A stretch of 64,000 nt of DNA from NCBI RefSeq assembly GCF_001194135.2, contig NC_068984.1, forward strand, positions 19,388,678 to 19,452,677, written 5' to 3'. Origin of the DNA: Octopus bimaculoides (lineage: Eukaryota). Numbering within the stretch: position 1 is the stretch's first letter; the number at the start of each line of letters is the position of its first letter. Of the stretch, positions 4,138 to 58,193 are shown in pieces. The notes under the pieces are model-generated. The model was not told the origin of the DNA. It did no database searches and saw only the letters and a list, made by a program, of their open reading frames with translations. A program made the position numbers and the translations under genes.

Positions 4138-4196
<59 letters not shown>

Positions 4197-4220
4197 CATA
4201 CAAACAAACACATAACTAAC

Positions 4221-4433: not shown

Positions 4434-4524
4434 CTGAAATAATGAAACATTCAATAGCTAAATACTCAGTAATATTGATAGGATTGTTTATGTCTGAAAA
4501 TGGTTTTGATTTACTTATTCCCTT

Positions 4525-7372: not shown

Positions 7373-7436
<64 letters not shown>

Positions 7437-8517: not shown

Positions 8518-8655
8518 CAGAATCTTCACTTCAAGTTCTTCAATCAATACCAATTGTTGTTTTAGGTCGCTGTCAACAGATGGAGTATCATGCTCTTTGG
8601 AAAGGACTTTTTTCTTAACCATGGCAATACGATCTAGAGATTCTTGAGTGGCTTG
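8518..8655 (-). CDS. Spectrin-repeat gene exon QATQESLDR...ELEVKIL, 46 aa, phase 0-0
   Basis: Not in the ORF track. Acceptor catactag|CAA, donor CTG|gtaagt, 138 nt open, phase-compatible with neighbours. Confidence 0.85.
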
Positions 8656-9813
8656 CTAGTATGGTAGGTAAATAGGAGATAAAATATTTTTACTCAAACA
8701 TAATACACATATATATTACATATATACATACATGATATACATATACTTTAAATGTATTTAGATATATATATATACTATATCATTTATATATATATAACAG
8801 CACCAAACAGTGATTAGAAATAAACAAACTTAAGGTTTGTTAAAATATGTTTATGATATATTTTAACTTCTAAAAGCAAATTCTCTGCAGTTACCACGGG
8901 GAAAAAATTCTCTCTTATGGTAAAGATATTTCAACTGACCTAAAGTTCATTTATATATATGTATGTACACACACACACACACACACAATGTAGGTCTGTA
9001 AGTCCTGATTGAGCAGAAAATCAGTGTTTCCAATGCAGTACTCAACTTGAACTCCTGGATATCTACACTCACATTAGAATTTTGAGAGAAAGTTTTTGAG
9101 TCCACTATTTCAGGAAATTGAGGTACATTATTGATAAGAGCGGTGAGTTAGTCTTATGAAAAGTAACATATTACACAATTAAGAAGATGCAGAATGAATT
9201 TGGCACATCTCTATTATTAGTTGTAATTGTTTTGGTACCATTCTGTTTCTAATGCCCTTACATATAAATGATTTCATATGAAAATATAACAGCTCACATT
9301 TTGATTCCAGTCTGATGAAGTGCCCCTCCAATATAATCAACTGTAATTTTTCACATGAAATCATCTACATGCAATGGCATTAGAAATGGAATAGAACTGG
9401 AACAACTACAAAATCATTCTTTGTCTTCTGAATTGTATGAAAACAAGAACTTGTTCCAACCATTTCCCTTGTACTTTAAGTCCCAACTAACATACTGAGG
9501 CAACATTCTCCCTCCCTTGGTTTGTTGACTTGTAAGTTATTAAATGACCTCACTGGTGCCAATGGCATGAAAAAGCACCCAGTACACACTGAAAAGCAGT
9601 TGGCATTAGGAAGAGCATCCAGCTGTAGCAACCTTGCCAAAGCAGACAGGGACGTATGATGCAGTCCTTGACTCATTGAATCCTTGTCAAACCATCCAAC
9701 CCATGTCAACATGGAACATGGACATAAAATGAAGATGATTATGATGGTGATGATTATGATCATTGTACAAAAAAATGACAGTAAAATAAAAATAAAAAAT
9801 AGTTTAAACTTAC

Positions 9814-10140
9814 CTGATATTTTTGACTAATAGAGTCAATCTTACTTTCAGTCAAATGTAGAGGTTCAGGAGAAGACAAAAATACATATTTCTGCTCCAA
9901 CCAAACTATTGTTTCCTTTAAAGAGTTGCTCAGTTCCTTTTCATTCATTTCTTTCATCTGGCACTCTTGAATCTTTTGGTCTATATTTCTTTTGCTGGTG
10001 TTTATATCAGACTGGACAATTCTGAGTTGTGAAGTCAAAGAATTTTCATTGTTATTTGGTAGATCTAAGTCTATTTGGTTTGCTTTCTCTGCCATAGCAC
10101 CAAGACCTTTTTCACATGTCTGTAGCTCATTGTAAACAAC
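9814..10140 (-). CDS. Spectrin-repeat gene exon VVYNELQ...VWLEQK...SQKYQ, 109 aa, phase 0-0
   Basis: Within ORF 9760-10161; acceptor aattcag|GTT, donor CAG|gtaagt. Confidence 0.92.
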
Positions 10141-10294
10141 CTGAATTGGGAGAAGCCGCAAGGAAGAAAATCCTATTATATATATATATAATACACATGT
10201 TTCATTATAAACACAGTTATGTTCAAGTTTTATCTATTTCATATTAGAGTGATCATATTTTTCTATGAGAATTTTACAATTGGTATGAAACAGT

Positions 10295-10655
10295 AGTCCT
10301 AAGCAGGCTGAGTGCAGATATGAACAGCATATGGGAACCGGTATTAAGGAAGGATAGGAGAATATTAAATTTATAAGCCCTAAAATTCACTCCAGAATTG
10401 TCCACGGGCATATGGCGGGCTACTAACCCCAAGATTCTGAGTTTGATTCCAGGCAGTGACCTGAACAATAACAATAATAATAATAATAATAATAATAACA
10501 TCAAAAAATACTTTCGGAATGAGAACCCAGGTTCGAAATTTCCCCAAGACACCTGATGAAGGCTGGAGGGTATATCAGCCGAAACGTTGTGTTAACAACA
10601 AACAAGATGAGGACAAATATCCATCAATTGTAAATAATGTAAATGACGAAACAGT
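10295..10655 (+). mobile_element. Penelope-like element 3' fragment / pseudo-LTR
   Basis: ORF end SRLSADMNSIWEPVLRKDRRILNL* resembles PLE C-termini; followed by (AAT)n and the hammerhead motif. Confidence 0.6.
10548..10593 (+). ncRNA. Minimal type I hammerhead ribozyme motif (Penelope-associated type)
   Basis: gacac-CTGATGA-a-GGCTG(gagggtatat)CAGCC-GAAAC-GTT-gtgtt: catalytic core boxes, 5-bp stem II, stem I and palindromic AACGTT stem III. Confidence 0.7.
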
Positions 10656-13301
10656 AGTGTTTTCAAATCCATATCTGATATTTCTAAACCCACAGTACTG
10701 AATATATTTGGAATTTGTGTTGTTTTTTTCTTATACACTGAACTTATAGAGTATTGACCAATTGACCAAAGGATTGAGGATTTATGTTCCATACTAGTGC
10801 TGTTTGTGTTGTTTTGTTATGATTTATCATAAGTTAGTTTGTGAAGAAATGCATTGCCCACGACCTTTGCAGACCATATACTCAGACTGGTGAGATTGGA
10901 GCAGATGATGGCAAGTCCAAGCATTTGCAGGAAAAAAACATGAACAGGGAAAATATCTGGTTGTGACATTTGAAATGGAGTAAACTGAAAAAGATACTTG
11001 AGCCCAGATGGTGGTATGAAACAGGGTTGTGTGTTAGACACAACCATTAGCAAATAGATTAAATATTCTATTACCAAGTCCACTTGACAGTATGTAAGTA
11101 GTGTGAAGGAGGAATATTATATACCTTTAGAGACAACATGGCAATGTATAACACATCCATATTTTGTTAGTTTGAAATGTTGAGCACAAAATTCTCTTGT
11201 TTGTTTACTTTACAACAGAATTATGAAAAGATGTTTAATTTGTCATAGTTTATATAATGAAAACTGATATCAATATTGACTGTAAAGACTGTGATTTGTT
11301 ATAGCCAGCTTGTTAATGGTAAATGTTCTGTTGGAGCATCACGAAAGTGATATAAAGTCACTCTGAAGCAAAATATGAACTCGTGTCTGTCATATGAGTG
11401 AAACTGTGGCATCCTTCACAAATTCAGTGGCTGATCATGGAAGCTAGAGAACTCTCTCTATTAAGGAAACTGAACTCTTTGAACAAACTCATATTGAAGT
11501 CCTTATAGGGAAATGGAGGAGGAGGAGGAAGAGGAGGGCACAAACAGAGCTAAATTGATCATATTACCCAATAACATTTATTTTTCATTTTATTTTTATA
11601 ATTTGGATTGTATATTCTTCTTTGATTTTAAAAATATTATTATTATTATTATCACTGTTATTATTATTTTGCCTGTTTACTATAACTATCAATATTGCAA
11701 ATGTCATAAGTGTATTTGGTGAATTCCTGGTTCTTGACAAATTTCTTCACTGGTAAGTGTAGCTGAATTATAAAAATCTATAAAACTTTTATAAAATAGA
11801 GTCTGAATAAACTGGTGATGGTTCATGCTGGCAAAAATTATACAAAGAGAGTGTATATGCTTTTGGGGAGAAGAGGAAAATGATATATTGCTCTAATGTA
11901 TTGCACTGATCCTTTGTCTGAAGAAAATACATTATTTTTTCCCACTCAGTTTTGAAATGTCAAATTCCCTTTTCCCCTGTAGCATTGAACTTATCCAAAC
12001 TGGTGAACTTCTCTGTTCAAGACTTCTTTGCAACCTGATCAAAGCTGCTCTCAGTTTGCCAGTAAGTGATGATGGCCAGGTTGAAAATAAAAACGTGATA
12101 GCATTTGGAGTTTGTTACAATAGTTCTTAAAAGAAAATGCTCCAAGAACATTGCTTTCAGTCATGTCTTCATGCTCAAGTGAAGAATGAATAAAGTGCTA
12201 AGGAGAAAAACCTGAAGATATACTGAGTTCAGAATAACAGTTGTAGTCTCTTTTATGTGTGCATTAGGCTTCTTTGAAAGATATTATTCATTTTCCCTTT
12301 GAAAAGAAAGAACCTTTTATTCTGATCTATGAAATATCAGAAAGAAATTTTTACAATCTATCTTGCAATATTGTAAACTTTTTATTGAAAATTCTTTCAA
12401 AATATGACTATTAACATTTGTGATACCAACCTGCCTGAGACACTGCCTGGTCTTATGATACAAACTTCTTGCTTAAAGTGATATACATTACACCCTTCTG
12501 CCAAAATTTCATGTAAGTTCTTATTTCAAATACTAACTTAATACTTTTTTTCTAATTTTGGCATGAGGCTAGCAATTTGTGGGGGAAGGGAAGTTGATTT
12601 CTTCAACACCATTGATTAACTGGTACTTATTTTATTGACCCCCACAAGAATGAAAGATAAAGTTGACCTTGATGGAATTTGAACTCAGAACATAAAGAAC
12701 CAGGAAAAATTTTGTCTGGCATGCTGAAAATTTTTTCAGCTCACCATCTTAAACAACAGTTTCAGCCTTTATTTAATATTCAGATTATTTTGTCAAATGT
12801 AATACTTATTTATTCATAATGTTTTGAATAAATCATGCATTGTCTTGTAGCTTCAAGATTTTAATAATGTGAGTGTTTATTTTTAGAATGACATTGTAAG
12901 GTAAGTGTGAGAGGCTGGATCTGGCTGGTTTGAACATAAAATAGGTAGAATATTTGGGCTGGATATGGCTGATTTAAATATTAAAAGTTTAATAATGGTT
13001 TCAAATTTTGGAACAAGGCCAGCAATTTTGGGGGAGGGTAAGTCAATTACATTGACCCCAGTGTCCAACTGGCGCTTATTTTATTAACCCAGGTGGCATT
13101 TGAACTCAGAATGCAAAGCCGGAAGGAATGCCGCTAAGCATTTTGTCCAACGTGGTAACGATTTTGCCAGCTCACCACCTTAAAGCAGTTGCATGGTGAT
13201 AGTTATTTTACTGAATTTCAAAATTGAAACAAAAACAGTGTTTCAGTACATTTTAACATAAAAATGGTAAAAGAAAGAAAGAACAAAAAACAGCGACAAA
13301 C

Positions 13302-13607
13302 CTTATATTTATTCACTTTTTCAGTAGTTGGGATGTTTAGAGCTGAGACTTCATCAACTTTCAGACTAGAATCTCTAAATGAAGTTTCCAAGCTAGCAAA
13401 TTCTGTATGATATTGTTTTCGTAGAGCCACAGCAACCTTTAAACGGTTGAGTAACTGAGTTATGTGTTCATTTAACAATGAGTACTTTGTTAGAATCTGT
13501 TGTATGTTAGTCGCACTTGTAGACTGACCAGTGGTGTTGAATTTTTTAACATACTCAGTCAATTTTTCTACAATATGATTATAACTCTCCATTTCTAGGC
13601 TCAGTTC
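13302..13607 (-). CDS. Spectrin-repeat gene exon ELSLEMESYN...VNKYK, 102 aa, phase 0-0
   Basis: Extends ORF 13218-13592; acceptor ctgatatag|GAA, donor AAG|gtttgt. Confidence 0.9.
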
Positions 13608-14133
13608 CTATATCAGACAAAAAGGAAAATATTTAAGTGAAAGACAATATAAATATTTAACTAAACAAAACCTTATGAAAAATGTTTAGAAAATGGGAGA
13701 AGAGTGTGTGCTGTGAGATCCTCGTTCTTTCAAATGAAGTGGGCTTGCCAAATTATTTTTTTCTCTTTGTGGCTCACAAAATAATTTCAATTTTGTAGAT
13801 TTAATTAAGGTGCGAGTATGGTGGTGTGATCAAGAAGTTTGCTTTCCAACCATGTGGTCTTGGGTTCTGTCCCACTGCATGGAACCTTGGGCAAGTATCT
13901 TCCACTATAGCCCTGTGCTGACCAAAGCCTTATGAATGGATTAGGCAGAAGGAAACCAAAAGAATCTTGTAATGTATGTATGTATGTATGTACACATGTG
14001 TGCATTTGTGTGTACCTGTGTCTTGTCATGGCTTTAACCAAACTTCATTGGGCCAGGTAGTAATTACCTAAACATACAAAAAGGGAGGAATTCTTTTGTG
14101 ACTTGAAGTGCTTTTCACCATAGGTCTTCTCAA

Positions 14134-14253
14134 TCAAAGCTGACCAACCAAACAACAACAACAGCCACTATGCCACCACCACCACCACTCTTCTTTAAGG
14201 TCAACTTTATCATCTTGACCAGAAACTCTGAACTCAGGAGATCTACAGATTTC
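14134..14253 (-). CDS. Candidate alternative terminal (or cassette) exon EICRSPEFRVSGQDDKVDLKEEWWWWWHSGCCCCLVGQL*
   Basis: Long T-rich tract plus tttgacag|GAA acceptor in phase 0 matching the upstream exon; 39 codons to TGA. Not needed for the spectrin chain. Confidence 0.3.
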   Translation of the reverse strand, partial: EICRSPEFRVSGQDDKVDLKEEWWWWWHSGCCCCLVGQL

Positions 14254-15600
14254 CTGTCAAACAAAATAACAAAAAGTAAAAAAAAAAAAAGGAAAAGAGA
14301 ATTGTGTCTTATTTAGTCCATAGCTTTAGTTTCATATTTTATTCATTGGCTAATGAAATCATTATGGAGGAAAGACAGAGCTTGAGGGAAAACATTGTAC
14401 AGGAATATACTTCTAAATTTAACAGCCCAAGATAAGCTAATGATAGAAAATTTAGTATTGCTGAACTATATAAGGTAAAATTATGTGAATGACTGCAGAA
14501 TGTATTCCTGTCAATAACATTTAAAGAATCAGTCTTCTTACTGGACACAGGCATGGCTGTGTGGTTAAGAAGTTTGCTTTGCAACTGCATGGTTCTGGGT
14601 TCAATCTCACTGCTTGCTACCTGGATTAGCTAATGCTTTCTGAGAGGAATATGGGAGGTAGAAACTGTGCAAAGCCCATATATGTATATATATATATNNN
14701 NNNNNNNTATATATATACATATATATATTGGGAATCCCTGTAATCTACAATTCCATTCTTCACAAATTGCTATATAAAATAAATAATTGATAAATATATG
14801 AAAGTTAATAGATAAATATCAAGGAAACCAGAATATCTTACATTTTAAGAATGAATAACCCTTGATATATTTGTTCTGTAAAGAGTTACAGGCACTCTTT
14901 TGTTGTTCTTACTGTTGAAAATGTAGTGAGCCAGTGACAGGCCAACTGGAAACTTGTAATCTATAATGCTATTGTTCACAAATTGCTACATAAAATAAAT
15001 AAATATCATCATAATGATTTCATGCCCATGTTCCTTGTTTGCATGAGTTGGATGGTTCAATAGGATCCAGTGGACCCAAGGACTGCATCATGTGCTACTG
15101 TCTGTTTCTGCATGGTTTCTACACCTGGATACCGTTCTTAAATGCCAACCACTTTACAACATGCTGTGGGTGCTTTTTGCATGCCAACCAGCAGTAATGA
15201 GGATGTCATGCACTTTGTAAGACTACAATCTTTGAATAAGGAGGAGGAATTTTAATCTAGATGAATATGTGGTAGAGAGGGGTAAAGTATGAGAGAAAGG
15301 GCTGAAGCAGAACAGGATTCTTGTTGTAGTGGAGTAACATGATAACTCCCATTTTAGAAGAGAGGGTGTAGTGGGAGAGTTTGAAAATGATAAAAAAAAG
15401 TGGTGATGAGGTATCAGAGTAGACCTTCATGGTATGAAGTGGGTAGGAATGAATTTGGGCAGGGGTACCAGGAGCGAGTGGGTGGAATAGGGGATGTCTG
15501 ATAGTGTGGAGAGGTGGGTGGGTGGCAGAACAGACATAATTATACACTTAAATAAATAATGATTAAAACAGAAATATACAAAATAATTTTTGCTTTTTAC

Positions 15601-15784
15601 CTTGTAATGTAGTAAAAGTTTCTCAGCTTCCTCCACAGAACTTCCAATTGGAGTAACAAGAGATGTTTGATTCTCGATCGATTCTAAGCATATTGATAGA
15701 CTTTGAACATTGGAATCAATTTCATCATGTTGACTCAGAGATTCCTGGAGCACCTTCAAAGAGTTAGACACTTCTTCGGAAACA
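15601..15784 (-). CDS. Spectrin-repeat gene exon (S)VSEEVSNSLKVL...LLLHYK, phase 2-0
   Basis: Acceptor gttttcag|T, donor AAG|gtaaaa, 184 nt; completes the AG+T codon left by exon 18538-18680. Confidence 0.9.
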
Positions 15785-17809
15785 CTGAAAACAAAAACAC
15801 ATTATAGATCAATCACTATTGAATTTTAAATAATCAATCAATATCTATTATTTTATTGGTTTCAGTAATTAAACTACAACCATACTGGGCACTGGCTTCA
15901 AAGATTTTTCATGTTTCTAATCTGTTTTATTGACACACCCACCTCCCTAGTACTTATTTCTGCCTGGTACTTATTTTGTCAATCTCTGTTTATTGAATCT
16001 CTAAGTTACACTCTGACATAAAGAGATACAACTAGTCACATTGGTTAACACAAATTGACACCCATACATATGTATATACACACATACATTAATGACAAAC
16101 TGGATGTTATCCACATGGGTGGGTAAATAATTTCTTTTGATAGAATTAAATAGCTTGATATCATAGTTTTCATGTGAATACACTTGCATTGAAACCTCTG
16201 GTATTGGACAATTGAATGTCACACACACACACACACACACACACAATGGCCTCCAATGCAGTTTCCATCCATCAAACTCTGTTCACAAAGAACTAATTGA
16301 TCTGAGGCCACCATAGGAGAAACTTGCCCAAGTTATTGTGCAATGAGATTGATCCCAGAACCCTATACTGAGAAGCAAACTTCTTAACCATGAGGCTAAA
16401 GTCTGCACCTATATTCAACACACCTATATTTATATGCACCTATATTTATATGTTATATCATGTTGATCATTAGCTACATAAATGAAAGAAAATGTCTATT
16501 CTGAGAGTTGAAAGTTATTGCATATTTAGTTCCTGGAAAATATCACACCCCTTTTCTTTTCCTTTTTTTTTTTTTTGTTATAACTTGAATAATAGAAAGA
16601 TACAATTTTGTTTTAGAAATTTGTACTCAGTGTATATTAGAACAGTTTGAAGTTTTAGAACTTATCTTTTAAGTCTTCTACAATGATATATGAGTTTGAC
16701 ATCTGTTCCTGGTGTTGCTTTGAAATTCAGAATAGCTGACAGAACTTAAAATTTGCTCAACAGTAAGATCACTTTAAAAAGATGGTCACTTTTTTTTTCT
16801 GTTATATACTTTATATTTTTTCACTACTTTATAATTCATGACTGACAGAACTTCCATGTGACAACTAAGTTCCATTTAGTTGTCATATGGAGAGATGCTA
16901 ATAAAATAAAAAAAAGTGATTGCGTTTACAACTATTTTCCCAATGCTAATATAAGCTGGACAGATCTATGTGACTTCCTCTCATCACTTGGCTACACCAT
17001 CAGTTCTCATTCTATAAAAAGTCACATTTTTTCCTAGTTTTCTTTGGAATGTTTTCTCAAATCATCAATTAACAATATTTTCAAACACAATGTTATAAAC
17101 AATGAGGAAGCTGCTTTGTGGTCACTTAACTTACAAAAAACTGTAACCAAATTCACTCCAAACCATATCTTAAAACTGAACCAAGGAAGGGCAATATTAT
17201 CCAATATGTCACAAGAAACTGACTCAACCCAAATAAAAATATATTATATATATACACAATCTGTAAAGTAGTTAGGGTTAAGAAGGGCTTCCAGCAATAG
17301 AAACTATGCTGAAGCAGACAATTTGTTAGTTCCCATCAAAGCATTCAACCTAAGCGAGCATGAAAAACAGATGTTAAATGCTGCTGCTGATGTCAATGAG
17401 ATATTCACACACACATGCACATGGTTTTAGATTCAATCCTACTGCATGGCACCTTGAATAAGTGTCTTCTAGCATGGGCTCTGGCCCAACCAAAGCCTTG
17501 CGAGCAGGTAACGTAGACAGAAATTGAAAGAAGTGCATTGTATATATGTGTGTGTGTGTGGGTGTGTGTAGATAACAAAATGATATATATATTTCATTAT
17601 ATGTATGTAAAGTACAACCCACTAAGTAGCCAAGAAATAACCTGGAACATCTGATGGGAGCTAAAAATGCACCATCAGAAGGAACCAGCCTTGGCATTTT
17701 GCTCAGAGAAATTCAGTATCTGCCTGGATATTATATCCCTCTTCTTACTATACATATATATACATACATATACATACATACATATATATATATACACACA
17801 CAAATATCT

Positions 17810-18070
17810 GGCTTGTGCGGGTGGCACATAAAAGACACCATTTCGAGCGTGGCCGTTGCCAGTATCGCCTGACTGGCCTTTGTGCAGGTGACACGTAAAA
17901 GCACCTACTACACTCTCTGAGTGGTTGGCGTTAGGAAGGGCATCCAGCTGTAGAAACTCTGCCAAATTTAGATTGGAGCCTGGTGTTGCCATCCGGTTTC
18001 ACCAGTCCTCAGTCAAGTCGTCCAACCCATGCTAGCATGGAAAGCGGACGTTAAACGATGATGATGATGA
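17810..18070 (+). mobile_element. (GAT)n-tailed retroposon (family C; other copies ~390-440, 6640-7030, 9550-9750, 25370-25560, 38508-38690, 46140-46290, 49345-49660)
   Basis: Shared ttggcgttaggaagggcatccagctgtagaaac...ccaacccatgctagcatggaaagcggacgttaaacgatgatgatg; (GAT)n end conserved, other end variably truncated. Confidence 0.8.
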
Positions 18071-18105
18071 TATATGTATATATATATATATAAATAAATA
18101 CATAT

Positions 18106-18357
18106 NNNNNNNNNNNNNNNNNNNNNNNNNNNNNNNNNNNNNNNNNNNNNNNNNNNNNNNNNNNNNNNNNNNNNNNNNNNNNNNNNNNNNNNNNNNNNNN
18201 NNNNNNNNNNNNNNNNNNNNNNNNNNNNNNNNNNNNNNNNNNNNNNNNNNNNNNNNNNNNNNNNNNNNNNNNNNNNNNNNNNNNNNNNNNNNNNNNNNNN
18301 NNNNNNNNNNNNNNNNNNNNNNNNNNNNNNNNNNNNNNNNNNNNNNNNNNNNNNNNN
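18106..18357. other. Assembly gap (others at 14698-14707, 27238-27247, 34877-35044, 38448-38466, 62071-62290)
   Basis: Runs of n. Confidence 0.99.
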
Positions 18358-18442
18358 CTCTAGGGATGAGTTACCTATACAGCAAAGTGCTTTACTGGTG
18401 TCAAATCAATGATCACTCTCTGATCAGCCATAACAGACAACC

Positions 18443-18485
<43 letters not shown>

Positions 18486-18537
18486 ATCTACATATAAATG
18501 TATGTATGTATCTATGTATAAATATATATGTCCATAC

Positions 18538-18680
18538 CTGGTTGTTTTACTGTTTAAGTCTTTGATTTGTTCTTGTATAGTTTGGCTATCAGTTGCAGAC
18601 AGATGTGGTTGCATTGCAGTAGAGATAGTTTCTGTGTCAGACAGAAGAACAATGTTTTCTTCGCATGTTTGATTCAATTC
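18538..18680 (-). CDS. Spectrin-repeat gene exon ELNQTCEENI...NSKTT, phase 0-2
   Basis: Acceptor tttttcag|GAA, donor CAG|gtatgg, 143 nt. Confidence 0.9.
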
Positions 18681-18867
18681 CTGAAAAAAGAAGTTAGTCC
18701 TTTCATTTAAGATTCTCTAAAAAGAAATTGTGTGGGGGGAAAAAAAAACAAAAAAAGAAACATATCTTTTACTTGATTAACTCAACAAGTTATAATATTT
18801 TTTCATAAATAATGTTAACCAACAAGCAAGAAAGGAGCAAAATATTTGCAAAGATCTGTTAGCTTAC

Positions 18868-19073
18868 CTGATATTCTTCAACTTGCTTTCGAAGAACTGA
18901 TGTGGCACAATCGGTGTGGATAGGATTTGAAGATTTCATTTTTGTAGTTTTGTACCATTTCTTAAGTTGTTCACAATTTGACTCATATTTACAAAGATGG
19001 TTAAAGAACAACTCCACATCACTAAGGTATGTTGTAATTTGCTGTTTAAGTGAATTATAACGAGTCTCCAAAC
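18868..19073 (-). CDS. Spectrin-repeat gene exon (G)LETRYNSL...KKWY...VEEYQ, phase 1-0
   Basis: Acceptor tattccag|GT, donor CAG|gtaagc, 206 nt. Confidence 0.9.
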
Positions 19074-20596
19074 CTGGAATAGAGAAAAAACTTAAGGTGA
19101 CAATTTAATTCATATTATTACGAACTAGCTGTGTGGTTAAGAAGTTCACTTCCCAGACAAGTGGTATTGGATTCAGTTTCACTAGATGGCATGAGACCTT
19201 AAGCAAGTGCAACTGAACACTCTGCTATACCCTGTGTCAATCAAAGCCTTGTGTGTGTGTGGATCTGAAAGAAACATGTCTTATATATATCTATATATCC
19301 TTATCTAAATCTATCTGTCTGTCTACCTATCTATGTATGTATAGTATCTATGTATGTATGGTATCTTTCTATATATCAATAGAGTATCACACAAAATATT
19401 TTGTGGTATTTGTTCCAACTCTTTATTTTCGAAATCCTACCAAGATCAACCATGCATTTCATTCATTTGGACTCAAAAAAAAAAAAAAAAAATACCAATC
19501 TATTCCTGTGGATTGGCACAATTATAAGAATGATGAATTATATGGCTGGTGGTGGTCTGATGGTATTTCTCCTGGCTTTTTACATTCTGCATTCAAATCC
19601 TACCATGACTCATTCGGTGGCAGATTGAATTAATACCACCACCTGGCTCCTCGGTGCCTATAGCAATGTCCCCTTCATTACAAGCATTGTAACTGTCTTT
19701 AGTTTGAGGATAACTTCCTTTCTCACTCCTTCCCATCAGTTTTGGAGGCTCTGTATGGTACCATACTCTGTATGGTATCACTGTCTTCTCTTCTAAGAAA
19801 AACAATATCTTTATTTAACCCTTTATCATTTAAACTGGCCATATCTGGCCCTAACATTCTATCTGTTTTATATTCAAAGTGACCAGATCCACCCTCTCAC
19901 ACCTACCCTACAATGTCATTCTAAAAGTAAACAATAACATTATTGAAATCTCAAAGCTACAAGATAATGCATGATTAATTCAAAGCAATACCAATAAATA
20001 AGCAATACAATAGATAGAGAAACCTGAATGCTTAAGAGTTAATGAGCCTTTCTTTATAAACATGTTAAAATCATTATAATTCAGAATTAAAATTTTAGCC
20101 ACTAGTAATATGACAGTGAAGGTGCACAGCTCAGTGGTTAGGGTATTTGGTTTATGATTGTAAGGTCATGAGTTCAATACCTAGCAGTGCATCATGTCTT
20201 TGAGTAAGACACTTTATTTCACATTGTTTTAGTCAACACAGCTGGCAGAAATGAGTAGTACCTGTATTTCAAAAGGCCAGCCTTCTTACATTCTGTGCTA
20301 TGCTGAATGTCCATGCGAGTGTGTGGAGTACTCAACCATTTGCACATTAATTTCACAAGCAGGTCGTTCTATTGATCGGATCAAATGGAACGCTTGTTGT
20401 TTGTAACTGTCAGAGTGCCAGTCAATACAACACTGAATCCTCCATGATCATGGCAGGTGAGCAAGTATCTCATGGAGTTGGGAACTGGCTAGGAGATGGC
20501 TTAGAAGGTCAACTGGAGTGACCTGAGCAAAAACCAAACAAAAGGTGGATACATGCTTGACCTGACCCAACCAATATATAAACACAATTTACTCAC

Positions 20597-20717
20597 CTGA
20601 TAATTTATGCTGTAGCTCTGCCTGAGATTCAAGACAACATTGGTTACTTATGGTATTTCCTGTTTTTAAGACTGATGCCAAGGGAACTTCATATTTTTCT
20701 ATTTCCACTTTAAGTTT
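20597..20717 (-). CDS. Spectrin-repeat gene exon KLKVEIEKYEVPL...QHKLS, phase 0-1
   Basis: Not in the ORF track. Acceptor ttgttttag|AAA, donor CAG|gtgagt, 121 nt; supplies exactly the phase 1 required by exon 18868-19073. Confidence 0.88.
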
Positions 20718-21880
20718 CTAAAACAAAAAAAAACAAAAAAAAAACATAGTGATCAACTCTACCAACTTGAAATTTTGAAGAAATATGGAGAAAAGAAGTT
20801 GATTAATCCTTTAGCATTTAAACAGACCATATTCAGCCCTAATTTTCTGTCAGTTTTGTGTTCAAATCAGCCAATTCTGGCCTCGCACACCTACCCTACA
20901 ATATGAAGCTGACATAAGCAATCACATCTTCGAATAACAAAGTTACAAGATAACACATGATTTAATTCAAACCTATGTGAATAAAGAGGCATACATTTGA
21001 CAGAGTAATCTGAATACTAAGGGGTCAACAAACAAAATGTTAACCCTTTCATTATCATATTTCTAAAGAAATACATTCTGTCCATTTCAATTCATTTTGA
21101 AAATAATGAAGACTTGAGTAAAATTTATCATTGTTTAGGGTGGTGTTTAGAACATAACATGAAATTCTGATGGAAGTCTTTAATTTTTGTCACTTTAAAA
21201 CAGGAAGTTTGTTTCAAAGCACCAGGGGTAGTCTCAGGAGGGTCAGTATCAAAAGAGTTAAAATTATCAAGATAACTTAAATGTGTTTAATTCAGTATTT
21301 GTTTGAAATGAATACATAACAGATATTTTTTGTGTTACTGATGTATGCAGCATAGGAGGTGTATAAACTTTTCATATACATGAGGTTTATCAGTAGTGTA
21401 AATTTATGTCTAGTTAAATATATATAAATATTTATTTTATTGCGTGTGTGTCCGCACGCATGTGTGTATATATGTCTTGATTTGGGTTTTTTCTTTATGT
21501 CATTTAATTTACATTATATTATGTTATGACTCTATATTTGATATAATTCCATTCAAAATATTAAAATATATTTAAATTTATTGAGAAATTTGTTAAACTT
21601 TGCACAAATATGTGTTTTCATTGTTTTTGTGAAATATTACACGCACTCATACACATATGCATGTTTGTGTATATTATGTATACATGCATGAATGTATAAA
21701 TGTGTGTGTATATATGTACGTATGTATATATATATATATATATATATACACTACACACACACGCACACACATATGCAAATATGTATGTATTTTATGTATG
21801 TAGGAAGGCATGCAGTAATAAAGCCTAAGACTACATGGTAATCATACACTTTTCCAAAAAAATAATATAGATGTTAATAC

Positions 21881-22213
21881 CTTGATGCCTTCCTTTTGAC
21901 CTTCAGTTGATAAATGGTTCAAGCTGAATGTCTGGAATCTCTGGATATCCAGCTCAGTGTTCTGTAACCACCGTGTTGTGTCTTCCATGTCTTTGTTAAG
22001 AGAGATTCTTTCAGAATGGTATTTCTGCCACCTTTCTAACATTTGAACTAAACTCTCCAGCATGTTTGGATAAATAGTTTTGATGTCAGCCAGCCATTTC
22101 TTCAGTTGCTTGTGAACCTGGCTCTTTGCAGAAATGTTCTTCAGTAATATTTTGCCATTCTGACATAACTGGGTTATAGGGGCCTCTTCCTTCTTCATTT
22201 CAATTTCCAGATT
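21881..22213 (-). CDS. Spectrin-repeat gene exon NLEIEMKKEE...ERWQKY...RWLQNTE...EGIK, 111 aa, phase 0-0
   Basis: Extends ORF 21842-22198; acceptor gtcaatag|AAT, donor AAG|gtatta. Confidence 0.92.
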
Positions 22214-22510
22214 CTATTGACAGAATAATGGTTAGTAGTTACACATTGTAAAAATATTGATTTCAAATTTTTGCACAAGGCCAGCAATTTCAAGGGAAGG
22301 AGTAAGTTGATTACATCAACCCCAATTATTAACTGGTACTTATTTTACCAACCCCGAATGAATGAAAGGCAAAAAGTCAGCCTCGGCGGAATTTGAATTC
22401 AGAACATAAGGCAGACAAAATACCGCTAAGCAATGTTACCTGGTGTGCTAATGATTCTGACAGTTCGCTGCTGTACTCATTGTAAAGAAGAAAAAAATAT
22501 TGAAAAGACT

Positions 22511-22897
22511 GTTGTTGTTGGCACTCTGTTGCTTACAACATTGAGGGTTCCAGTTGATCAGATCAACGGAACAGCCTGCTCATGAAATTAACATACAAGT
22601 GGCTGAGCACTCCACAGACATGTGTACCCTTAACGTAGTTCTCGGCGATATTCAGCGTGACACAGTGTGACAAGGCTGACCCTTTGAATTACAGGCACAA
22701 CAGAAATAGGAAGTAAGAGTGAGAGAAAGTTGTGGTGAAAGAGTACAGCAGGGTTCGCCACCATCCCCTGCCGGAGCCTCATGGAGCTTTAGGTATTTTC
22801 GCTCAATAAACACTCACAACGCCCGGTCTGGGAATCGAAACCGTGATCCTATGACCGCGTGTCCGCTGCCCTAACCACTGGGCCATTGCGCCTCCAC
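22511..22897 (-). mobile_element. Young tRNA-head SINE (family E)
   Basis: A/B-box-like head ggaggcgcaatggcccagtggttagg...ggtttcgattccc, CpGs retained, 12-bp TSD attgaaaagact. Confidence 0.85.
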
Positions 22898-25639
22898 ATT
22901 GAAAAGACTATAAACAACAAAAACATATATTCAACACAAAACTTCTAATCCATCACACAGTTTAACACCTCTACGTGATCCTTGGATGTCTCTAACAAAA
23001 TATACTTTGTTACCAGTGTTCAGGCTAGATCTTTGGTTTGAGAATGTCTTACTCTTCCCACACATTATCCTTGGAAACCCTGTAAAGGGGGTCAGAGGCA
23101 TCTCTTTTCCTTCTGATTGATTGATGAAAAGAATGAAATAAATACACAAGAACATGAAAATTTTTCAAAGGAAAGCCAACTTAATTATGATTTTCAGTAT
23201 TATGGATCACAATCATGGCTTTTAAGGTAAATTAAATGATGAACAGTGATTGCTGTTGTTACATTTAGCAACAGATAAGAAGTACAGAACCAAATCATAG
23301 TTGTTCCTGATGAACGAATATAATTTGGTAACATGTCTCATGTTTTTGATAACAGGCCCCTGAGAGATGGTTAGACCTGGCAGGAATGCAATCCAGGTGC
23401 CAAAGACTGAAACAGATAGAGATCTCTCATTGCTTCCCAACCACATAATGGCTTGCTGGTTATTTGGAATAAATAGTAAAGTTCAGAATATTTTAAAATA
23501 AAAATCAGTCCAGGGAACTATAATAAAATACCCCAAGACATCAATAGTTGAAAAATAAGGCAAAAAATATACACTCAACATCATGTTCTCATCCCCAGCA
23601 TTTATTTTACTCTGAGCCTGTTTTGTCTGGCACTCTGATAACAAGAACAGAGGAATGGGAGCTCTTAGTGAAATATGATGCATATGTATGTACCATTTCT
23701 TCCTGCTCAGTCTGTCTTGTTCTCTCATATACCTGTATTTCAAAGGGCCAGCCTTGTCACATGGGTACCTGTGTTTGTACAGTGCTCAACCATTTGCATG
23801 TTAATTTCATGGGTAGGCTGTTTGGTTGATTATATCAACTGGAACACTTGTTGTAACCAACAGAGAACTAGGCCCACATATAAACATATATTATCCATAC
23901 ACACACACATACACATATATATACACAGAGATAGACAGATATATATATATGACATAAATATATTCCAAAGTAGAAAAAGAGAAAATGGGAGATTATTACA
24001 CGAATTAAAATATGAATTAAGACTGTATGAAAACCACAACCTTTTGGTCAAGTTTATATAAATTCAATCATTTAAACAGTAAACTTAACGCTTTGCAAAC
24101 ACTTGATTCTTAATTTGAATGCATGCAGTTTAACAGTTGTGATCAAACAAAGGTACAGTATATATATCCAACATAAAATGACAATAGATTTTTGTAATTA
24201 TTCAACAAACGAAGTTTAGGAACATCATTTCTCTCAGCAATTGTTAGATATTATAATTTTTATTGCTGGATTATTCAGAGAGAATTGTATTACCAATAAT
24301 TTTGGCTGATATAAAAACTTTCCTTTATTTCTTCTTGTTTTAGAAAGGCGTCACTATATCCATCTATATTTATAAAACAGTTAAAATTTTCTGGTGTCAT
24401 TCACTTCATTTTGATTAGGTGATAAACCCAATTACAAAGTGAAAGTAATTTCATTCAATTTTGGATTTTCTTAATTTTGAAACCTTATAGTTTATAATAT
24501 AGGACATGGTGTTGCAAGAGAATCACATTCCCACATTTCTATAGACCCATATGCCAACACACACACACACACATATATATTCTAGGCATTCCATTGGTTA
24601 TCACAAAGATTTCTGTTGATCTGATAAATGAAACAGCCTGCTAATGAAATTTAATGTGCAAGTGGCTGAGTATTCCACAGACATGTTAACCCTTAACGTA
24701 GATCACAGGAAGATTCAGTGTGGTATAGAATGTGACAAGGCTGACCCTTTGAATTACAGGTACAACTCATTTTTAGCAGTGAGCTGACTGGAGCAACATG
24801 AAATAAAGTTTCTTGATTAAGGAAATGTGCTACCAGGGATCGAACTCATGACTCTAGGATTGTTAGCCAAATACCCTCACTACTAAGCAAAGTACCTTCA
24901 CTATACATATACATTACCCTACCCTCTCAAAGAGTTACAATACTCTATGCTTACCTTTTCCACATCCTTACAGCCTACCTCACCTTGTCATCTTTCTTGT
25001 CCCCCTCCCCATCAGCTGTATCATTACTATCTTGCTGCTCTCTCCCCACCTGCATTCCTCTATCCTTCTCCAACCCTGAAACCCTATTCAATTTTTACAG
25101 TTGAAGGTTGCCTCCCCATCCTCTCATCTCCTGCTCCCCATACAAACTTGCAATGCTCTCCCCCACATGTCTACTCACCTTGGTTCTTGAGGGGCCACCT
25201 GCATGCCTCACCCCTAATATCTGTTCCTTAGCAGCCCCTACTAATAATTCTCTCCCTCTGCTACAAGAACCTGCTCTGTCCCCAGTCACTCAATCATAAT
25301 TTAATCCCTCATCCCCAACATAAAGCTGACCCCTGTGTCCTCCAGGTTCATAGTCTTGCAAAGTGCACGACAACCACATTACTGCTGGTGCACAAAAAAG
25401 CACCCAAGACATGGTATGAAGTGGTTAGTGTTAGGAAGGGCATCAAACTGTGGAAACCATGCCAAACAGACACTGGAGCATGATGCAGTCTTCAGCCCAT
25501 CAGATCCTGTCAATGCATCTAAACAATGTCAGCATGAAACATGGACATTAAATGATATGACAGGCTTCTTTCAGTTTTCATCTACCAAATCCACTCACAA
25601 GGCTTTGATAATGACAGAAACCGGAATAAGAGCAAAAGA

Positions 25640-25960
25640 ATAAAGATGACGATGATAATGATGATGATGGTGGTTGTGGTGGTGGTGGTGGTGATGATGG
25701 TTGTAGTGATGATGATAATAATGGCGTTAAAGTAATGATAATGATGGTGGTGTAGGTGATGGCAATGATGACGATGGTAGTTGTGGCGGTGATGATGATG
25801 ATGGTGTTGAAGTGGTGATAATGATGGTGGTGGTAATGATGGTGACAATGACGATAATGATGGTGGTGGTGGTGGTGGTAGTGTTGGTGACAAAGGTGAT
25901 GGTGAGGATGACAAAGATGTTGGTCATGATGATGACAATGATATCACTGGTGAAGAAGAA

Positions 25961-25992
<32 letters not shown>

Positions 25993-26010
25993 CGATGACA
26001 ACGATGATAT
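25640..26010 (+). repeat. Compound (GAT/GGT/GAC)n trinucleotide tract; a similar tract lies at 35500-35800
   Basis: Direct inspection; explains the spurious poly-I/T/H/V ORFs. Confidence 0.9.
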
Positions 26011-26038
26011 AGAATAGAAATAAGATGAGATTACTTAC

Positions 26039-26249
26039 TTTGATATCGTTCACCCTTTTGCTGGCATCACTGACCAGATAGGAAATATTGTTATCTTGAC
26101 TAGAAATATGATTGGACATTTCTTTGAGCCAGGCCAATATACCGTCGACTTGGTTTTTGAATTCTTGAATCGACTGATCATTGGTACTAGTGGCAAATAG
26201 CTGCTTATTGGCTCTTGTGGCCAATTCATCACACTTTTTCTCTGCACAT
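26039..26249 (-). CDS. Spectrin-repeat gene exon (R)CAEKKCDEL...LAWLKEM...VNDIK, phase 2-0
   Basis: Acceptor gttatctag|A, donor AAA|gtaagt, 211 nt. Confidence 0.9.
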
Positions 26250-26518
26250 CTAGATAACAAGAGATTTTTTGAATTATATTTTCAGCAAACTGATTGCAGT
26301 CAATTTGGTTGGATGGCTTGAAGATAAAATGCTAGCATAGGATGTTTTATAGTGTATTTCATGGTTCAGTGAATTATAGTTCTGAATTGTGTAACGGTTA
26401 ATTGTGAATGAGTTTAATCTGTCCAGTATCAATAAGATATGTATGGAAAAGAAAGGAAGTTAGAAAGAAGAGGGGAGAAAAAAGAGTGAAAGGTGGAGAA
26501 AGAGTAAAGGGGAGAGGA

Positions 26519-26646
26519 GATGAATAAGAGAGGGTGAAAGAGAAAAAGCAAGGGAAGAGGAGGAAATGAATAAGAGAGGGTGAAAGAGAAAAAGCAAGGG
26601 AGGAGGAGGAAATGAATAAGAGAGGGTGAAAGAGAAAAGCAAGGAG
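26519..26646 (+). repeat. Purine-rich ~45-bp minisatellite x3
   Basis: atgaataagagagggtgaaagagaaaaagcaaggga.gaggagga repeated. Confidence 0.85.
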
Positions 26647-26806
26647 ATAAAAGAAGTTGATTAAATGAGAAAGAGCAAAAGAGTATATAAGCAGGGTGAT
26701 ATAAAAGAGAGGGGGAAGCATAATGGAAAGAAGTAAATATGAAATAGAGAGAGGGAGTGTGATTAAAAACATGCAAGAATAGAATTTTAAATGATGCAAG
26801 GGGGGA

Positions 26807-26875
<69 letters not shown>

Positions 26876-27076
26876 AACGAATAAGAATGGATGATGAGAT
26901 ATAGAGAAAAATTAAATATAGAAGTAGTTTGTATTTATTTTGCTGGAACGGTGTAACAGTTAAGGATTCAATATGTGACCTGGATACAGCGACAGACATT
27001 GTGTAATAGGTGATATGAGCCAGTGGGAGGGGTTGTTTGTGAATAAGATTCTTGCGAGCAAAAAGAGACTGTGACA

Positions 27077-27300
27077 TACGAGGGGGTGCTGAGAAGTTTC
27101 TGGCTTTGGGTAAAAGGAAATACAGGAGGATCAGTTAATTATGATTTTATTCAACATATTCCTCTCTCAGATTCACACACTTATTGTAGTGGTCTTTCAG
27201 TTTTTCTAAGCCTTGTAAAAGAACTCAGAAGGTTGGGNNNNNNNNNNTGGGCTTCCAGCCAGGCTTTCCATGATGCCCTTAAAGCCAGCACCCCTTCGTA
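27077..27300. mobile_element. Mariner-type MITE
   Basis: TA-CGAGGGGGTGCTG ... CAGCACCCCTTCG-TA terminal inverted repeats with TA target duplication. Confidence 0.8.
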
Positions 27301-27335
27301 GAAGAGACAGTTGTTATTTTGTGAGTGATACTCAC

Positions 27336-27454
27336 CTGACTTTGTCATCCACCAGTTGTACATCATGGATGCTGAGCGTTTTAGTGATGGTTTCCTGTTT
27401 AGATTTAATTTGTTTCAGCTTGTTGCTGCTTGACTCAAGTTTATGAGATAGTTT
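27336..27454 (-). CDS. Spectrin-repeat gene exon KLSHKLESS...VDDKV, phase 0-2
   Basis: Acceptor ctttgcag|AAA, donor CAG|gtgagt, 119 nt; AG+A gives Arg at the junction with 26249. Confidence 0.88.
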
Positions 27455-28384
27455 CTGCAAAGTCAAAGTAAATAGTAACGTATAATTAATGTCATAGAAA
27501 TATCTTTAAAAATATAATAGAAACATTGTAGCAAATATTGTAACACAAGGTAGAGAGCAACAAAGAGAAGACTGTGACATACAAGGGGGTGCTGAAAAGT
27601 TTGCATATTCAGGAAAATAAATTTAAGCACCATTTTGCATACAGGAGCTGGAGAATATTTTTTGAGGCATTTTTTTTGGAAAAAAAGTACATTTTATATG
27701 CCATCAAACGTGGTATGTTCAATGCTAATATTATTTATGTACACTTCAATTATTAATGATTGTATCTATTTATGTTGTGTGAAAAATTTGAAAACCAGAA
27801 GTGGATATTTAGAATAACAAATATCAATGGAGCAAACTTGATAAGAAAATTATAGTAATTGACAAAATTTCCCTCAGCATATCTTCATGAAATTTTATCT
27901 CTGAAAATAATACATAAAATGTCTTTGAAGTTGGGCACAACAACAAAGGGTCTGAAACTAGTCTCTTCTTGTGTTTCAGAATCCAACATCTATTAATCAA
28001 CAAATATTAATGTCACCCAGTCTGTATGGCACATGATGAGATCAGGATTTGAAGTAACAACCTAGTTGGTTTGCATCTTTTGTTTCTTATAAACTTTCGG
28101 TTCCATTATGACACTCAGACACCATTTCTTGAATGGTTAATTATTAAGACCTAAACAGAAAAGGATAAGCAATAAAATTGATCTGTTTCTATGACAATGT
28201 TACCTTGAAACCAAACTAAATGGTTGAACAACTTCATTATTTGAGTTACAAAGCAATAATACTTGTCAAGCTTAATTTAAATGCTGTATAATTATCATCA
28301 ATTATTGCAGACAAAAGAATGAAATGTAGCTTTAATTATAGTTAATGGCTGATACCATTTAGAGACCTAAGCTTTTATGTTATC

Positions 28385-56336: not shown

Positions 56337-58193
56337 TTACTTCAGTATTTCTTCTTTAAGTGTTTGTTTCATTTTTTCAGCAATTCTTTTAAGTTGGCGA
56401 GATTTTCTAGTCACTTTCTCAATAGCCTCATCAAGGTGGTACCTGTCCATTACAAGAGATCGTTGATCACGTCTTCGAGAAGAAAATTCATGCTGATGTC
56501 TTGGGTGACGAGCTGCAAGGTCTAAATCATCATAAGAATGCCTGGATGACCTTCTGGATTGTCTTTGAGGAAAGCCATGTGGTGTATCTGAAACCTGTTC
56601 GTTTTGGTTTGGTAGGAACTGATGTGGGGAGGAATTTGCAGAGGAAACATAAGGATTGGCGATATAAGGTGGTGGATTTGTAGGTAGTACTGGGTTCTGA
56701 GACTGAGTGGAATTTTGGGAAATGAATTGTGGTAAATTGTTTGAAAAGCCAGAATCAGTCACTGGTTCAGAAGCAACATTTCTATTAAGGGGGACTGTTG
56801 GACGGTGCATGGTTGAAAATCCCAAAGCGGTACCATTCTGCTGCTGCTGCTGATTAGAATGGAATCTTCGTAAATGTGGCTCAGGAAGTTGGTAGCTGCG
56901 CAGTCTTTCAATACGTTGACTGATATTGTTTAAATCTTGTTGAGTAACCTTCTTTCTTGAAAATACTGGCCTTGAATTTTGTGTTACAGAATTGAAAGAC
57001 GTTTGTGGTCTTTGAGGAATCAAATACATTGGTTTAGGTGGCACAAAATTAGTGTTATTTCTATACTGTGGCGAGACAAAATTTGAATTACTTTGATTAC
57101 CATTTGCTTCAGAAGTCTCCGATGAGTTGCCAGGATGCTGTGCAGTGTTATTCAATTGAATCAGTTGAGGAGATGAAACTTCATCATTCTGTTTTGATTC
57201 TGGTGATAAAAGACTGTTATTTGATACAAATTTCACATCATTCAGAATATCTTTAAGTTTTTCATGTCTAACAAAACTGACAGAGTTATCCTCACTAAAA
57301 GAAGTTTGAGTTCCTTGGTCGGTATATGTTTGGGTACTTGCATCACAAGTAAAATCTGATTGCTTAATAACACGGACATCTTTAAGGATTTCCTTGAGCA
57401 TGGTACCATTTAGAGTTGAAGAAGGAGAATAAACACTGTCAGACATTGTTGAGTTTTGGTCGATTCCTTTGTCTGTCTTTAGGCTTTTTACTTCAAACAG
57501 TATGTTTCTTAACAGATCGCTTTTTGAGCCACTCAAAGATTTTGTTTGTGCCGAAATAGAATGTAAGGAAGTATTAGAGGTTTGCATTGCTCTGCTACGT
57601 AACAGTCTTGTTTGGGTTTGGACATCATTAATGGGTAGACTACTGTTTAAAGAACTAAAGGAGTGAGCAAAAGACTCGTTAATTCCGAAATTTTTTGGAG
57701 TCTGTGTTCTAGCATTGCAATGAGTCTGAGAGCTGGTACTCCTCATCCAGCCATCAGTAGATTCATTGATATGATTACTCATAAATGAGATACTGTCATC
57801 AGAATGGCTACTGTACAAAGTTCTGGTGGAATGAAAACCTTCGAAATCAGCATCATTATCTAGAGTAACATCAAAACTAGATGCCTGCATGGTGTTTGTT
57901 TCCCCATACCCAGACTCCTCACTTTCGGATTCAAGCAGCACATTTCTACACTTTAAAGATGAATGTGGGCTGAATGTATCTAAACCATACCTCCGTTTTG
58001 AGTGTTCGCTATCTCTTGATGAAGATGGTCTTTGCTGGTAATCAGTGAAGGAAGCACCATTCGCAGAGGGAAATTTTGATGCAAATGGATCAGTATCAGA
58101 ATCGTCTTCTGAGTCGGAGGTGAGCCGAGCCCTTCTACCAGGATAGCGGGCAGATGGTTCTGAAGTTTGAGTGGAGTCACACCGCTTGGTTGG
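56337..58193 (-). CDS. Large terminal exon, 618 aa, Ser/Thr/Gln/Asn-rich disordered segment with C-terminal coiled coil; gene identity unknown
   Basis: ORF 56337-57941 extends upstream without stops to acceptor ctaccctccacag|CCA (phase 0); ends ...LKEEILK*. 1857 nt open in AT-rich DNA. Confidence 0.88.
   Translation of the reverse strand, partial: PTKRCDSTQTSEPSARYPGRRARLTSDSEDDSDTDPFASKFPSANGASFTDYQQRPSSSRDSEHSKRRYGLDTFSPHSSLKCRNVLLESESEESGYGETNTMQASSFDVTLDNDADFEGFHSTRTLYSSHSDDSISFMSNHINESTDGWMRSTSSQTHCNARTQTPKNFGINESFAHSFSSLNSSLPINDVQTQTRLLRSRAMQTSNTSLHSISAQTKSLSGSKSDLLRNILFEVKSLKTDKGIDQNSTMSDSVYSPSSTLNGTMLKEILKDVRVIKQSDFTCDASTQTYTDQGTQTSFSEDNSVSFVRHEKLKDILNDVKFVSNNSLLSPESKQNDEVSSPQLIQLNNTAQHPGNSSETSEANGNQSNSNFVSPQYRNNTNFVPPKPMYLIPQRPQTSFNSVTQNSRPVFSRKKVTQQDLNNISQRIERLRSYQLPEPHLRRFHSNQQQQQNGTALGFSTMHRPTVPLNRNVASEPVTDSGFSNNLPQFISQNSTQSQNPVLPTNPPPYIANPYVSSANSSPHQFLPNQNEQVSDTPHGFPQRQSRRSSRHSYDDLDLAARHPRHQHEFSSRRRDQRSLVMDRYHLDEAIEKVTRKSRQLKRIAEKMKQTLKEEILK

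Follow-up and report, generated by a model that had tools for sequence, protein, structure and literature searches.

What does the long, uncharacterised open reading frame (ORF) on the minus strand of a 64,000-nucleotide stretch of the Octopus bimaculoides genome (RefSeq assembly GCF_001194135.2, contig NC_068984.1, positions 19,388,678 to 19,452,677; the whole stretch is called the window here) encode, and to which gene does it belong? We consider it probable, with real room for doubt, that the disordered tail it encodes is a multivalent client of the dynein light chain LC8 (DYNLL), and that splicing joins it to nesprin-type spectrin repeats through an alternative 3'-terminal exon. The tail carries QT motifs that are enriched and conserved triplet by triplet over three molluscan classes, in sequence predicted to be disordered; its splice geometry is that of a terminal exon, and one gene model runs from spectrin repeats into a TQT tail. 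From this sequence pattern we infer that the tail would bind LC8, at several sites, and dimerise.

The coding unit is a single exon:

56337..58193, minus strand: 3'-terminal coding exon, one open frame of 618 residues plus stop, from PTKRCDSTQT to KEEILK and the stop codon.

The first-pass annotation, made from the letters of the window, had placed its motifs in a terminal exon, and both borders bear this out. At the 5' end a pyrimidine tract runs into a cag acceptor (AG at 58195-58194, phase 0), and at the other end the frame closes with the stop codon at 56339-56337. The translation matches residues 4-621 of UniRef A0A0L8I860_OCTBM (621 residues, uncharacterised) with 100% identity; no counterpart of the 'MWL' first exon in that UniProt model was found on the minus strand. 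Past the stop, AATAAA/ATTAAA poly(A) signals are found at 30, 102, 138 and 633 nt in a very AT-rich stretch, and because of that composition they were given no weight. A long (TA)n microsatellite occupies about 55985-56045, some 300 nt 3' of the stop codon.

Eight QT sites lie in the exon, given below as 8-mers spanning -5 to +2 around the glutamine, with coordinates checked by translation. Scores are those of a surrogate position-specific scoring matrix (PSSM) for LC8 binding, described further on.

58161-58184, minus strand: S1, RCDSTQTS; TQT in 14/14 orthologs reaching the region; PSSM 13.1, ortholog median 15.5.
57720-57743, minus strand: S2, RSTSSQTH; [S/C/T]QT in 27/27 orthologs; PSSM 10.5.
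57696-57719, minus strand: S3, CNARTQTP; TQT in 25/27 orthologs; PSSM 12.0.
57606-57629, minus strand: S4, NDVQTQTR; TQT in 24/27 orthologs; PSSM 15.3.
57576-57599, minus strand: S5, RSRAMQTS; [M/L/I/V]QT in cephalopods and gastropods; PSSM 9.2.
57540-57563, minus strand: S6, HSISAQTK; [A/N/S/Q]QT in 26/28 orthologs; PSSM 4.4.
57324-57347, minus strand: S7, CDASTQTY; TQT in 25/28 orthologs; PSSM 14.1.
57300-57323, minus strand: S8, TDQGTQTS; TQT in 26/28 orthologs; PSSM 18.1.
57696..57743, minus strand: double site S2+S3, RSTSSQTH/CNARTQTP.
57300..57347, minus strand: double site S7+S8, CDASTQTY/TDQGTQTS.

All eight strings named in the first-pass annotation are thus present on the minus strand, at coordinates that agree with its interval of 57300-58180, and its two closely spaced pairs correspond to S2-S3 and S7-S8, each with a glutamine-to-glutamine distance of 8. 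The array comprises five TQT anchors, one SQT, an MQT, an AQT and an overlapping VQT; the last shares S4 with a TQT in a second, overlapping register, and the two are therefore counted as one site. S1 lies 3 residues past the splice acceptor, 5' of every in-frame ATG. S4 is gone from P0003 and P0004, divergent cephalopod sequences that read AQQ there, and the segment that holds S5, whose anchor is weak or non-canonical, is deleted in most bivalves. S6 sits inside TSLHSIG[A/N]QT+R, among the best conserved blocks of the tail, with A or N at -1. Its flanks recall the SIGIQV and NIGIQT class, the LC8 motifs of GKAP and 53BP1 (LC8Pred Table S4, PMC6607443). From its N-terminal end the tail reads S1, an acidic block, the pair S2-S3, S4, S5, S6, helix 1, helix 2, the pair S7-S8, helix 3, a long variable P/Q-rich linker, helix 4 and a C-terminal helix.

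The motifs are far more frequent than composition predicts. Exon residues 1-310 contain nine [TSMAVI]QT triplets against 0.64 expected (about 14-fold) and five TQT against 0.16, and none of 20000 composition-preserving shuffles matched either count (P<5e-5).

Orthologs were collected in two ways, by a word-indexed search and by exhaustive profile searching against 1.84 billion representatives. The tail family is small, with 24 representatives at E<=0.001 in the profile search; its named members are all molluscan (Octopus, Dreissena polymorpha DPMN_088543, Elysia chlorotica, Candidula unifasciata), and neither search found a member in another phylum. Conservation was measured on a 28-sequence alignment of cephalopods, bivalves and gastropods with a mean column identity of 37%. 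With all eight sites taken together, the mean identity to octopus is 0.72, 0.91 and 0.89 at -1, 0 and +1, and falls to 0.36, 0.35, 0.33 and 0.33 at -5 to -2 and 0.34 at +2. The Q and T core columns average 0.90 versus 0.34 for the remaining columns of residues 4-330, and no set of eight dipeptides among 100000 drawn at random was as conserved (P<1e-5). Glutamines outside the cores average 0.15 and threonines outside them 0.31. Two further QT dipeptides serve as internal controls, at Q400 (RPQT) and at Q613 (KQTL, in the last helix), and both are confined to Octopus. The first-pass annotation had named motifs conserved no better than background in orthologs as the outcome that would speak against it; the QT cores are conserved far above background.

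Besides the QT cores, one acidic segment stands out in the alignment:

57864..57935, minus strand: acidic block LESESEESGYGETNTMQASSFDVT, exon residues 87-110 (coordinates calculated from the exon start, not re-translated).

Octopus, bivalves and gastropods share the block, LESESEESGYGET..TMQASSFD, almost unchanged, at S92, S97, Y99, G100, T102, S109, F110 and D111 (P0001 numbering). One profile-search match, P0035 (308 aa), carries about 60 residues of the C-terminal region of the tail (FREFP.SFEDENDGFLSDESEYDGG...AAKQLR) between unrelated sequence, and this chimera is probably a gene-model artefact.

Disorder was approached through an AlphaFold2 model built on the 28-sequence alignment (mean predicted local distance difference test (pLDDT) score 50.9), which is a proxy for disorder and not a measurement. 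All eight QT sites fall in predicted coil with pLDDT <50, as the earlier description of the exon as disordered would have it. Five helices are predicted, at residues 227-244, 267-281, 309-326, 421-436 and 580-620 (P0001 numbering):

57471..57524, minus strand: helix 1, KSDLLRNILFEVKSLKTD; holds four of the family's six invariant columns, L231, L235, V238 and K242.
57360..57404, minus strand: helix 2, TMLKEILKDVRVIKQ; helix-1 pattern repeated.
57225..57278, minus strand: helix 3, SFVRHEKLKDILNDVKFV; helix-1 pattern repeated, after the S7+S8 pair.
56895..56942, minus strand: helix 4, QQDLNNISQRIERLRS; conserved block T420, D423, R430, L434; pLDDT about 90-95.
56343..56465, minus strand: C-terminal helix, 41 residues, QRSLVMDRYHLDEAIEKVTRKSRQLKRIAEKMKQTLKEEIL; conserved in all orthologs; pLDDT about 90-96.

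Helices 1-3 share the pattern hL+xILx[ED]V+xhK (LLRNILFEVKSLK, MLKEILKDVRVIK, KLKDILNDVKFV). Their mutual profile-profile similarity is weak (P about 1e-3 to 4e-3 versus 0.95 for the control), and they are therefore termed repeat-like, with no claim of duplication. ILFEV in helix 1 was also considered as a Spindly-like motif, an idea dropped because the match is too degenerate and its context wrong. Two conserved and confidently predicted helices lie far from the QT array, namely helix 4 and the C-terminal helix, which contain VTQQDLNNISQRIERLRSYQLP and DRYHLDEA...LKRIAEKMKQTLKEEIL. These may be the real partner-binding or self-association elements, and the modelled C-terminal helix is a candidate for either role. 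Pfam searches with the tails of P0001, P0004, P0006 and P0017 returned only sub-threshold noise, such as TEX12 and rpo30_N, and no Pfam model for the tail.

To which gene the exon belongs is indicated by P0031 (UniParc UPI0005AE4041), a partial gastropod protein in which 332 residues of spectrin repeats are followed by RRRCRSTQTP...ESESEESGYGD...TQTPGHVRTQT. The junction coincides with an exon end in Elysia crispata and Dreissena. The spectrin part has PF25034 Spectrin_SYNE1 as its best Pfam match (E=6.5e-6, 26.4 bits against a curated cut-off of 35), and the same domain is precomputed for the entry; a sequence search of the PDB with this part gave only weak apolipoprotein-like helical matches. 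A Dreissena spectrin-repeat exon 8.3 kb upstream of the TQT exon ends ...GCC ATG CTT AAG/gtaagt in phase 0, and the TQT exon starts ...ttctaacag/ACA AGA AAG, again in phase 0. A Dreissena gene model with an 8746-residue product spans the TQT locus on the same strand. In the octopus window, spectrin-like sequence follows on the minus strand:

4014..27505, minus strand: about 10 spectrin-like exons downstream of the TQT exon; Pfam Spectrin E=1.5e-5 on a hand-made concatenate, below the curated cut-off.
About 27505-27335, 26260-25727, 22213-21845, 18677-18375 and 15771-15427, minus strand: spectrin-like segments.
13607-13221, 10233-9763, 8655-8488, 6575-6306 and 4454-4014, minus strand: spectrin-like segments.

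One of these exons weakly matches Spectrin_SYNE1, and together they are probably the host giant gene continuing when the TQT exon is skipped. We hold it to be likely that a nesprin-like giant gene uses the TQT exon as an alternative 3' end, and we go no further because the basis is one gene model and splice-site logic, not reads; that the host is a nesprin we infer. The contigs of P0003, P0009 and P0012 show intron-like sequence with stops upstream and give no junction evidence, and no contig for P0031 itself is on record. At Elysia crispata locus L010 spectrin exons are present and no TQT exon was found within about 11.6 kb downstream; the 10 kb upstream at Elysia chlorotica L007 and at bivalve L008 showed no spectrin exon.

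The ORF may instead be an independent nested gene, which is how it is annotated in Dreissena (DPMN_088543) and Octopus (A0A0L8I860). Existing annotations give a separate gene of 412-621 residues, the Elysia chlorotica model has its own short 5' exon, and the 5.8 kb upstream in the octopus window show no spectrin exon. Set against these annotations is the conserved N-terminal stretch of 100 residues, S1 included, which has no in-frame ATG in Octopus or Dreissena and starts exactly at the conserved acceptor. The first in-frame ATG in Octopus comes about 100 residues into the exon, 3' of S1 and of the ESESEESGYGE block. In Dreissena an in-frame stop stands two codons 5' of the exon and there is no ATG before MHASSFD, and S1 and the acidic block, 5' of that methionine, are conserved. 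Four other genomic contigs are alike in this, the conserved sequence always starting at the acceptor just before '+CRSTQT'. DPMN_088543 (Dreissena CM035917.1, locus 10001-11239) starts at the internal methionine of MHASSFD and therefore omits about 100 conserved residues including S1; the open frame begins at the acceptor near 9687. P0031, furthermore, joins spectrin repeats to the tail at that very boundary, and the phases match. We regard a nested gene as unlikely, if still to be reckoned with; even if right, it leaves the LC8 reading of the array unaffected. Current annotation in Octopus, Dreissena, Elysia and Candidula treats the ORF as a stand-alone, uncharacterised protein, which an alternative terminal exon would correct.

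How far the sites resemble LC8 motifs was assessed with a log-odds PSSM rebuilt from the 79 binder 8-mers of LC8Pred Table S4 and tested on 32 anchor-containing non-binders (PMC6607443). It is a rough stand-in for the LC8Pred matrices, which are not published as numbers. The leave-one-out median is 14.6 for binders and 8.8 for TQT-containing non-binders, with an area under the curve of 0.80. A cut-off of 12 is passed by 70% of binders, and four of the eight octopus sites score 12 or more. On sequence grounds, then, four sites look like ordinary binders, two look borderline and two (MQT, AQT) look weak. The SQT anchor occurs among the validated LC8 binders of the LC8Pred training set (PMC6607443).

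The spacing of the sites shows a regularity. Within S2-S3, and likewise within S7-S8, the glutamines are exactly 8 residues apart in 27/27 orthologs; S5 and S6 are 12 apart in 13/13, and S3 and S4 anything from 13 to 40. As an LC8 motif takes 8 residues, neither pair has a linker. The shortest linker in a study of ASCIZ, of 3 residues, already gives lateral LC8-LC8 contacts and off-register complexes (PMC10046861).

Several results weigh against the tail being a multivalent LC8 client on a spectrin rod. The PSSM cut-off of 12 is also passed by 34% of TQT-containing non-binders. The MQT and AQT anchors of S5 and S6 are without a validated binder in the LC8Pred training set, whose single AQT peptide and single LQT peptide were both non-binders, and its authors report that 7/19 PSSM-predicted peptides bound and that many TQT peptides did not (PMC6607443). 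Positions flanking the QT triplets are not conserved. A linker of zero is shorter than the shortest in that study of ASCIZ, and simultaneous occupancy of both members of a pair is therefore doubtful. The spectrin-to-TQT junction rests on P0031, one partial gene model of uncertain evidence type, and the Pfam nesprin and spectrin matches fall below curated cut-offs. Finally, tblastn with P0031 and P0038-P0041 did not find the upstream spectrin exon in octopus positions 58194-64000; this exon is either outside the window or hidden by the run of N at 62071-62289.

These points also bear on the number of sites, put at up to about eight in the first-pass annotation. Eight motifs are there and six have a validated anchor type, and eight is best kept as an upper bound because the pairs lack a linker and the S5 and S6 anchors are unprecedented. 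Simultaneous occupancy may be nearer four to six putative sites. The two members of a pair may be alternative registers, may hold two LC8 dimers packed very tightly, or may together make one composite site bound by another partner.

The invariant pairs are also the main support for a different reader of the QT triplets, such as a Tctex-type light chain or another beta-strand-capturing domain, or for each 8-residue double motif being one composite site. Their fixed spacing of exactly 8, in all 27 orthologs and at both pairs, and its shortness relative to the ASCIZ linkers (PMC10046861) would suit such a reader, as would the strong conservation of S6 despite an anchor poor for LC8. Yet triplet conservation is the same at S1 and S4, which stand alone with no partner motif beside them. 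We know of no other reader of T-Q-T triplets, and TQT is the best documented LC8 anchor (PMC6607443). We consider this explanation improbable.

Less probable again, to the point of being very doubtful, is that the array is an SQ/TQ cluster domain, its sites phosphorylated by kinases of the ATM/ATR/DNA-PK type and not bound by LC8. A working definition of such clusters is at least three S/T-Q in 100 residues, a count that S2-S4 reach with three in about 40 residues, S7 and S8 adding two more. However, the T at +1, which an S/T-Q site does not need, is as conserved as the Q (0.89 versus 0.91). The residue at -1 is M, L, I or V at S5, A or N at S6, and C in 7/27 orthologs at S2, and these conserved sites therefore cannot be phosphoacceptors. 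The two readings are compatible, as TQT phosphorylation could regulate LC8 binding. A mere by-product of S-, T-, Q- and N-rich, low-complexity composition, with no specific function, is excluded, since shuffles that keep the composition never reach the observed counts and Q and T outside the cores (0.15 and 0.31) show nothing of the 0.90 within them.

For a multivalent LC8 client, analogy with ASCIZ, Nup159, KANK1 and the dynein intermediate chain suggests how the tail might work. A TQT-type triplet and the five residues that precede it would form a beta-strand in one groove of an LC8 dimer, whose other groove would be filled by the same motif of another tail molecule. With several such dimers, two tails could be zipped up in parallel and in register; their short amphipathic helices, three per copy, and their 41-residue C-terminal helices would then be brought close to one another, and the tail would become stiffer. 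The encoded isoform would stop after the TQT tail and not continue into the downstream spectrin repeats, so that a spectrin-rod protein would gain an LC8-dependent dimeric end in place of its remaining rod. We give rather little credence to a bolder version, in which molluscs make a KASH-less nesprin-like isoform with an LC8-zippered rod end and the zero-linker double TQT modules represent an LC8 binding mode not yet described. In such a mode two LC8 dimers might stack into a rigid block, a single dimer might use one register or the other, or LC8 might share the module with a second light chain, and the spectrin-rod linker would gain a dimerisation end that depends on LC8 and can be switched.

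Among the closest known systems is the C-terminal LC8-binding domain of ASCIZ/ATMIN, with 7 motifs in Drosophila and 11 in human. This domain and the octopus tail are both long and disordered, with numerous TQT-type motifs that vary in strength and in linker length, and the ASCIZ QTQT-type sites SNIQTQTE and FDTQTQTD resemble S4. Short and long linkers shape occupancy in ASCIZ (PMC10046861). The octopus tail differs in having no sequence homology to ASCIZ (profile searches return only the molluscan family) and no zinc finger by Pfam, in being attached to spectrin repeats and not to a transcription factor, and in having its array interleaved with conserved helices and containing two zero-linker pairs. 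In the dynein-light-chain interacting domain of yeast Nup159, tandem LC8 motifs give a stiff dimeric rod. The report on KANK1 describes how closely spaced tandem motifs in its L2 linker turn a disordered segment into a stiff dimeric rod (PMC12803091). The hosts are unrelated to the octopus protein, however, and the octopus sites are split by helices as 1 + 2 + 3 + 2 and do not form one even array. LC8 sites adjoin a coiled coil in Swallow, Ana2, the dynein intermediate chain and GKAP, and those of the octopus tail stand at a fixed short distance from helices that might pair if LC8 held two chains side by side: S6 is 12 residues from helix 1 in 23/27 orthologs, and S8 is 16 from helix 3 in 21/27. 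Unlike the coiled coils of these clients, the octopus helices are predicted as isolated in the AlphaFold2 monomer.

On the spectrin side, the likeness is to nesprin-1/SYNE1. The upstream exons best match Spectrin_SYNE1, and the 8746-residue Dreissena model is close in size to human nesprin-1 giant, at about 8800 residues. Nesprins include KASH-less short isoforms, and nesprin genes are known for rod-truncating alternative terminal exons. The C-terminal KASH and N-terminal calponin-homology domains of a full-length nesprin-like product would fall outside the 64-kb window. Full-text literature searches found no paper linking nesprins or spectrin-repeat proteins with an LC8 motif array, and SYNE genes are absent from the LC8Pred supplementary files, the human proteome scan included. 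From its sequence, the tail is best filed as a putative new, taxon-restricted multivalent LC8 client, distinguished by its nesprin-like rod attachment and its invariant zero-linker pairs.

If the tail binds LC8, a large nesprin-type cytoskeletal linker joins the multivalent LC8 clients, and a spectrin rod can acquire an LC8-dependent dimerisation module by way of an alternative terminal exon. The family also offers a natural experiment for LC8 biophysics: triplets have been kept over three molluscan classes as flanks drifted, with the spacing of the pairs fixed, and this zero-linker spacing bears on how linker length controls occupancy and rigidity.

The window holds other features apart from the exon and its host. 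Assembly gaps (N runs) lie at 14698-14707, 18106-18357, 27238-27247, 34877-35044, 38448-38466 and 62071-62289; the last interrupts the intron that precedes the TQT exon, and a small exon could be concealed there. ORF fragments at 61255-61803 (minus strand) and 40440-40844 (plus strand) share the signature ...W(N/D)F.IQTDR.I.A.(R/K)PD(L/I)...K.C.(I/L)ID..., which we take to resemble conserved ORFs of invertebrate retroelements, and they are likely transposon debris in introns. A dispersed repeat, one frame of which reads ...LQLDALPNAN(H/C)..., occurs near 6915, 9628 and 17953 (minus strand) and 38629 (plus strand); with at least four copies on both strands and more degenerate copies besides, it is probably an octopus repeat resembling a short interspersed nuclear element.

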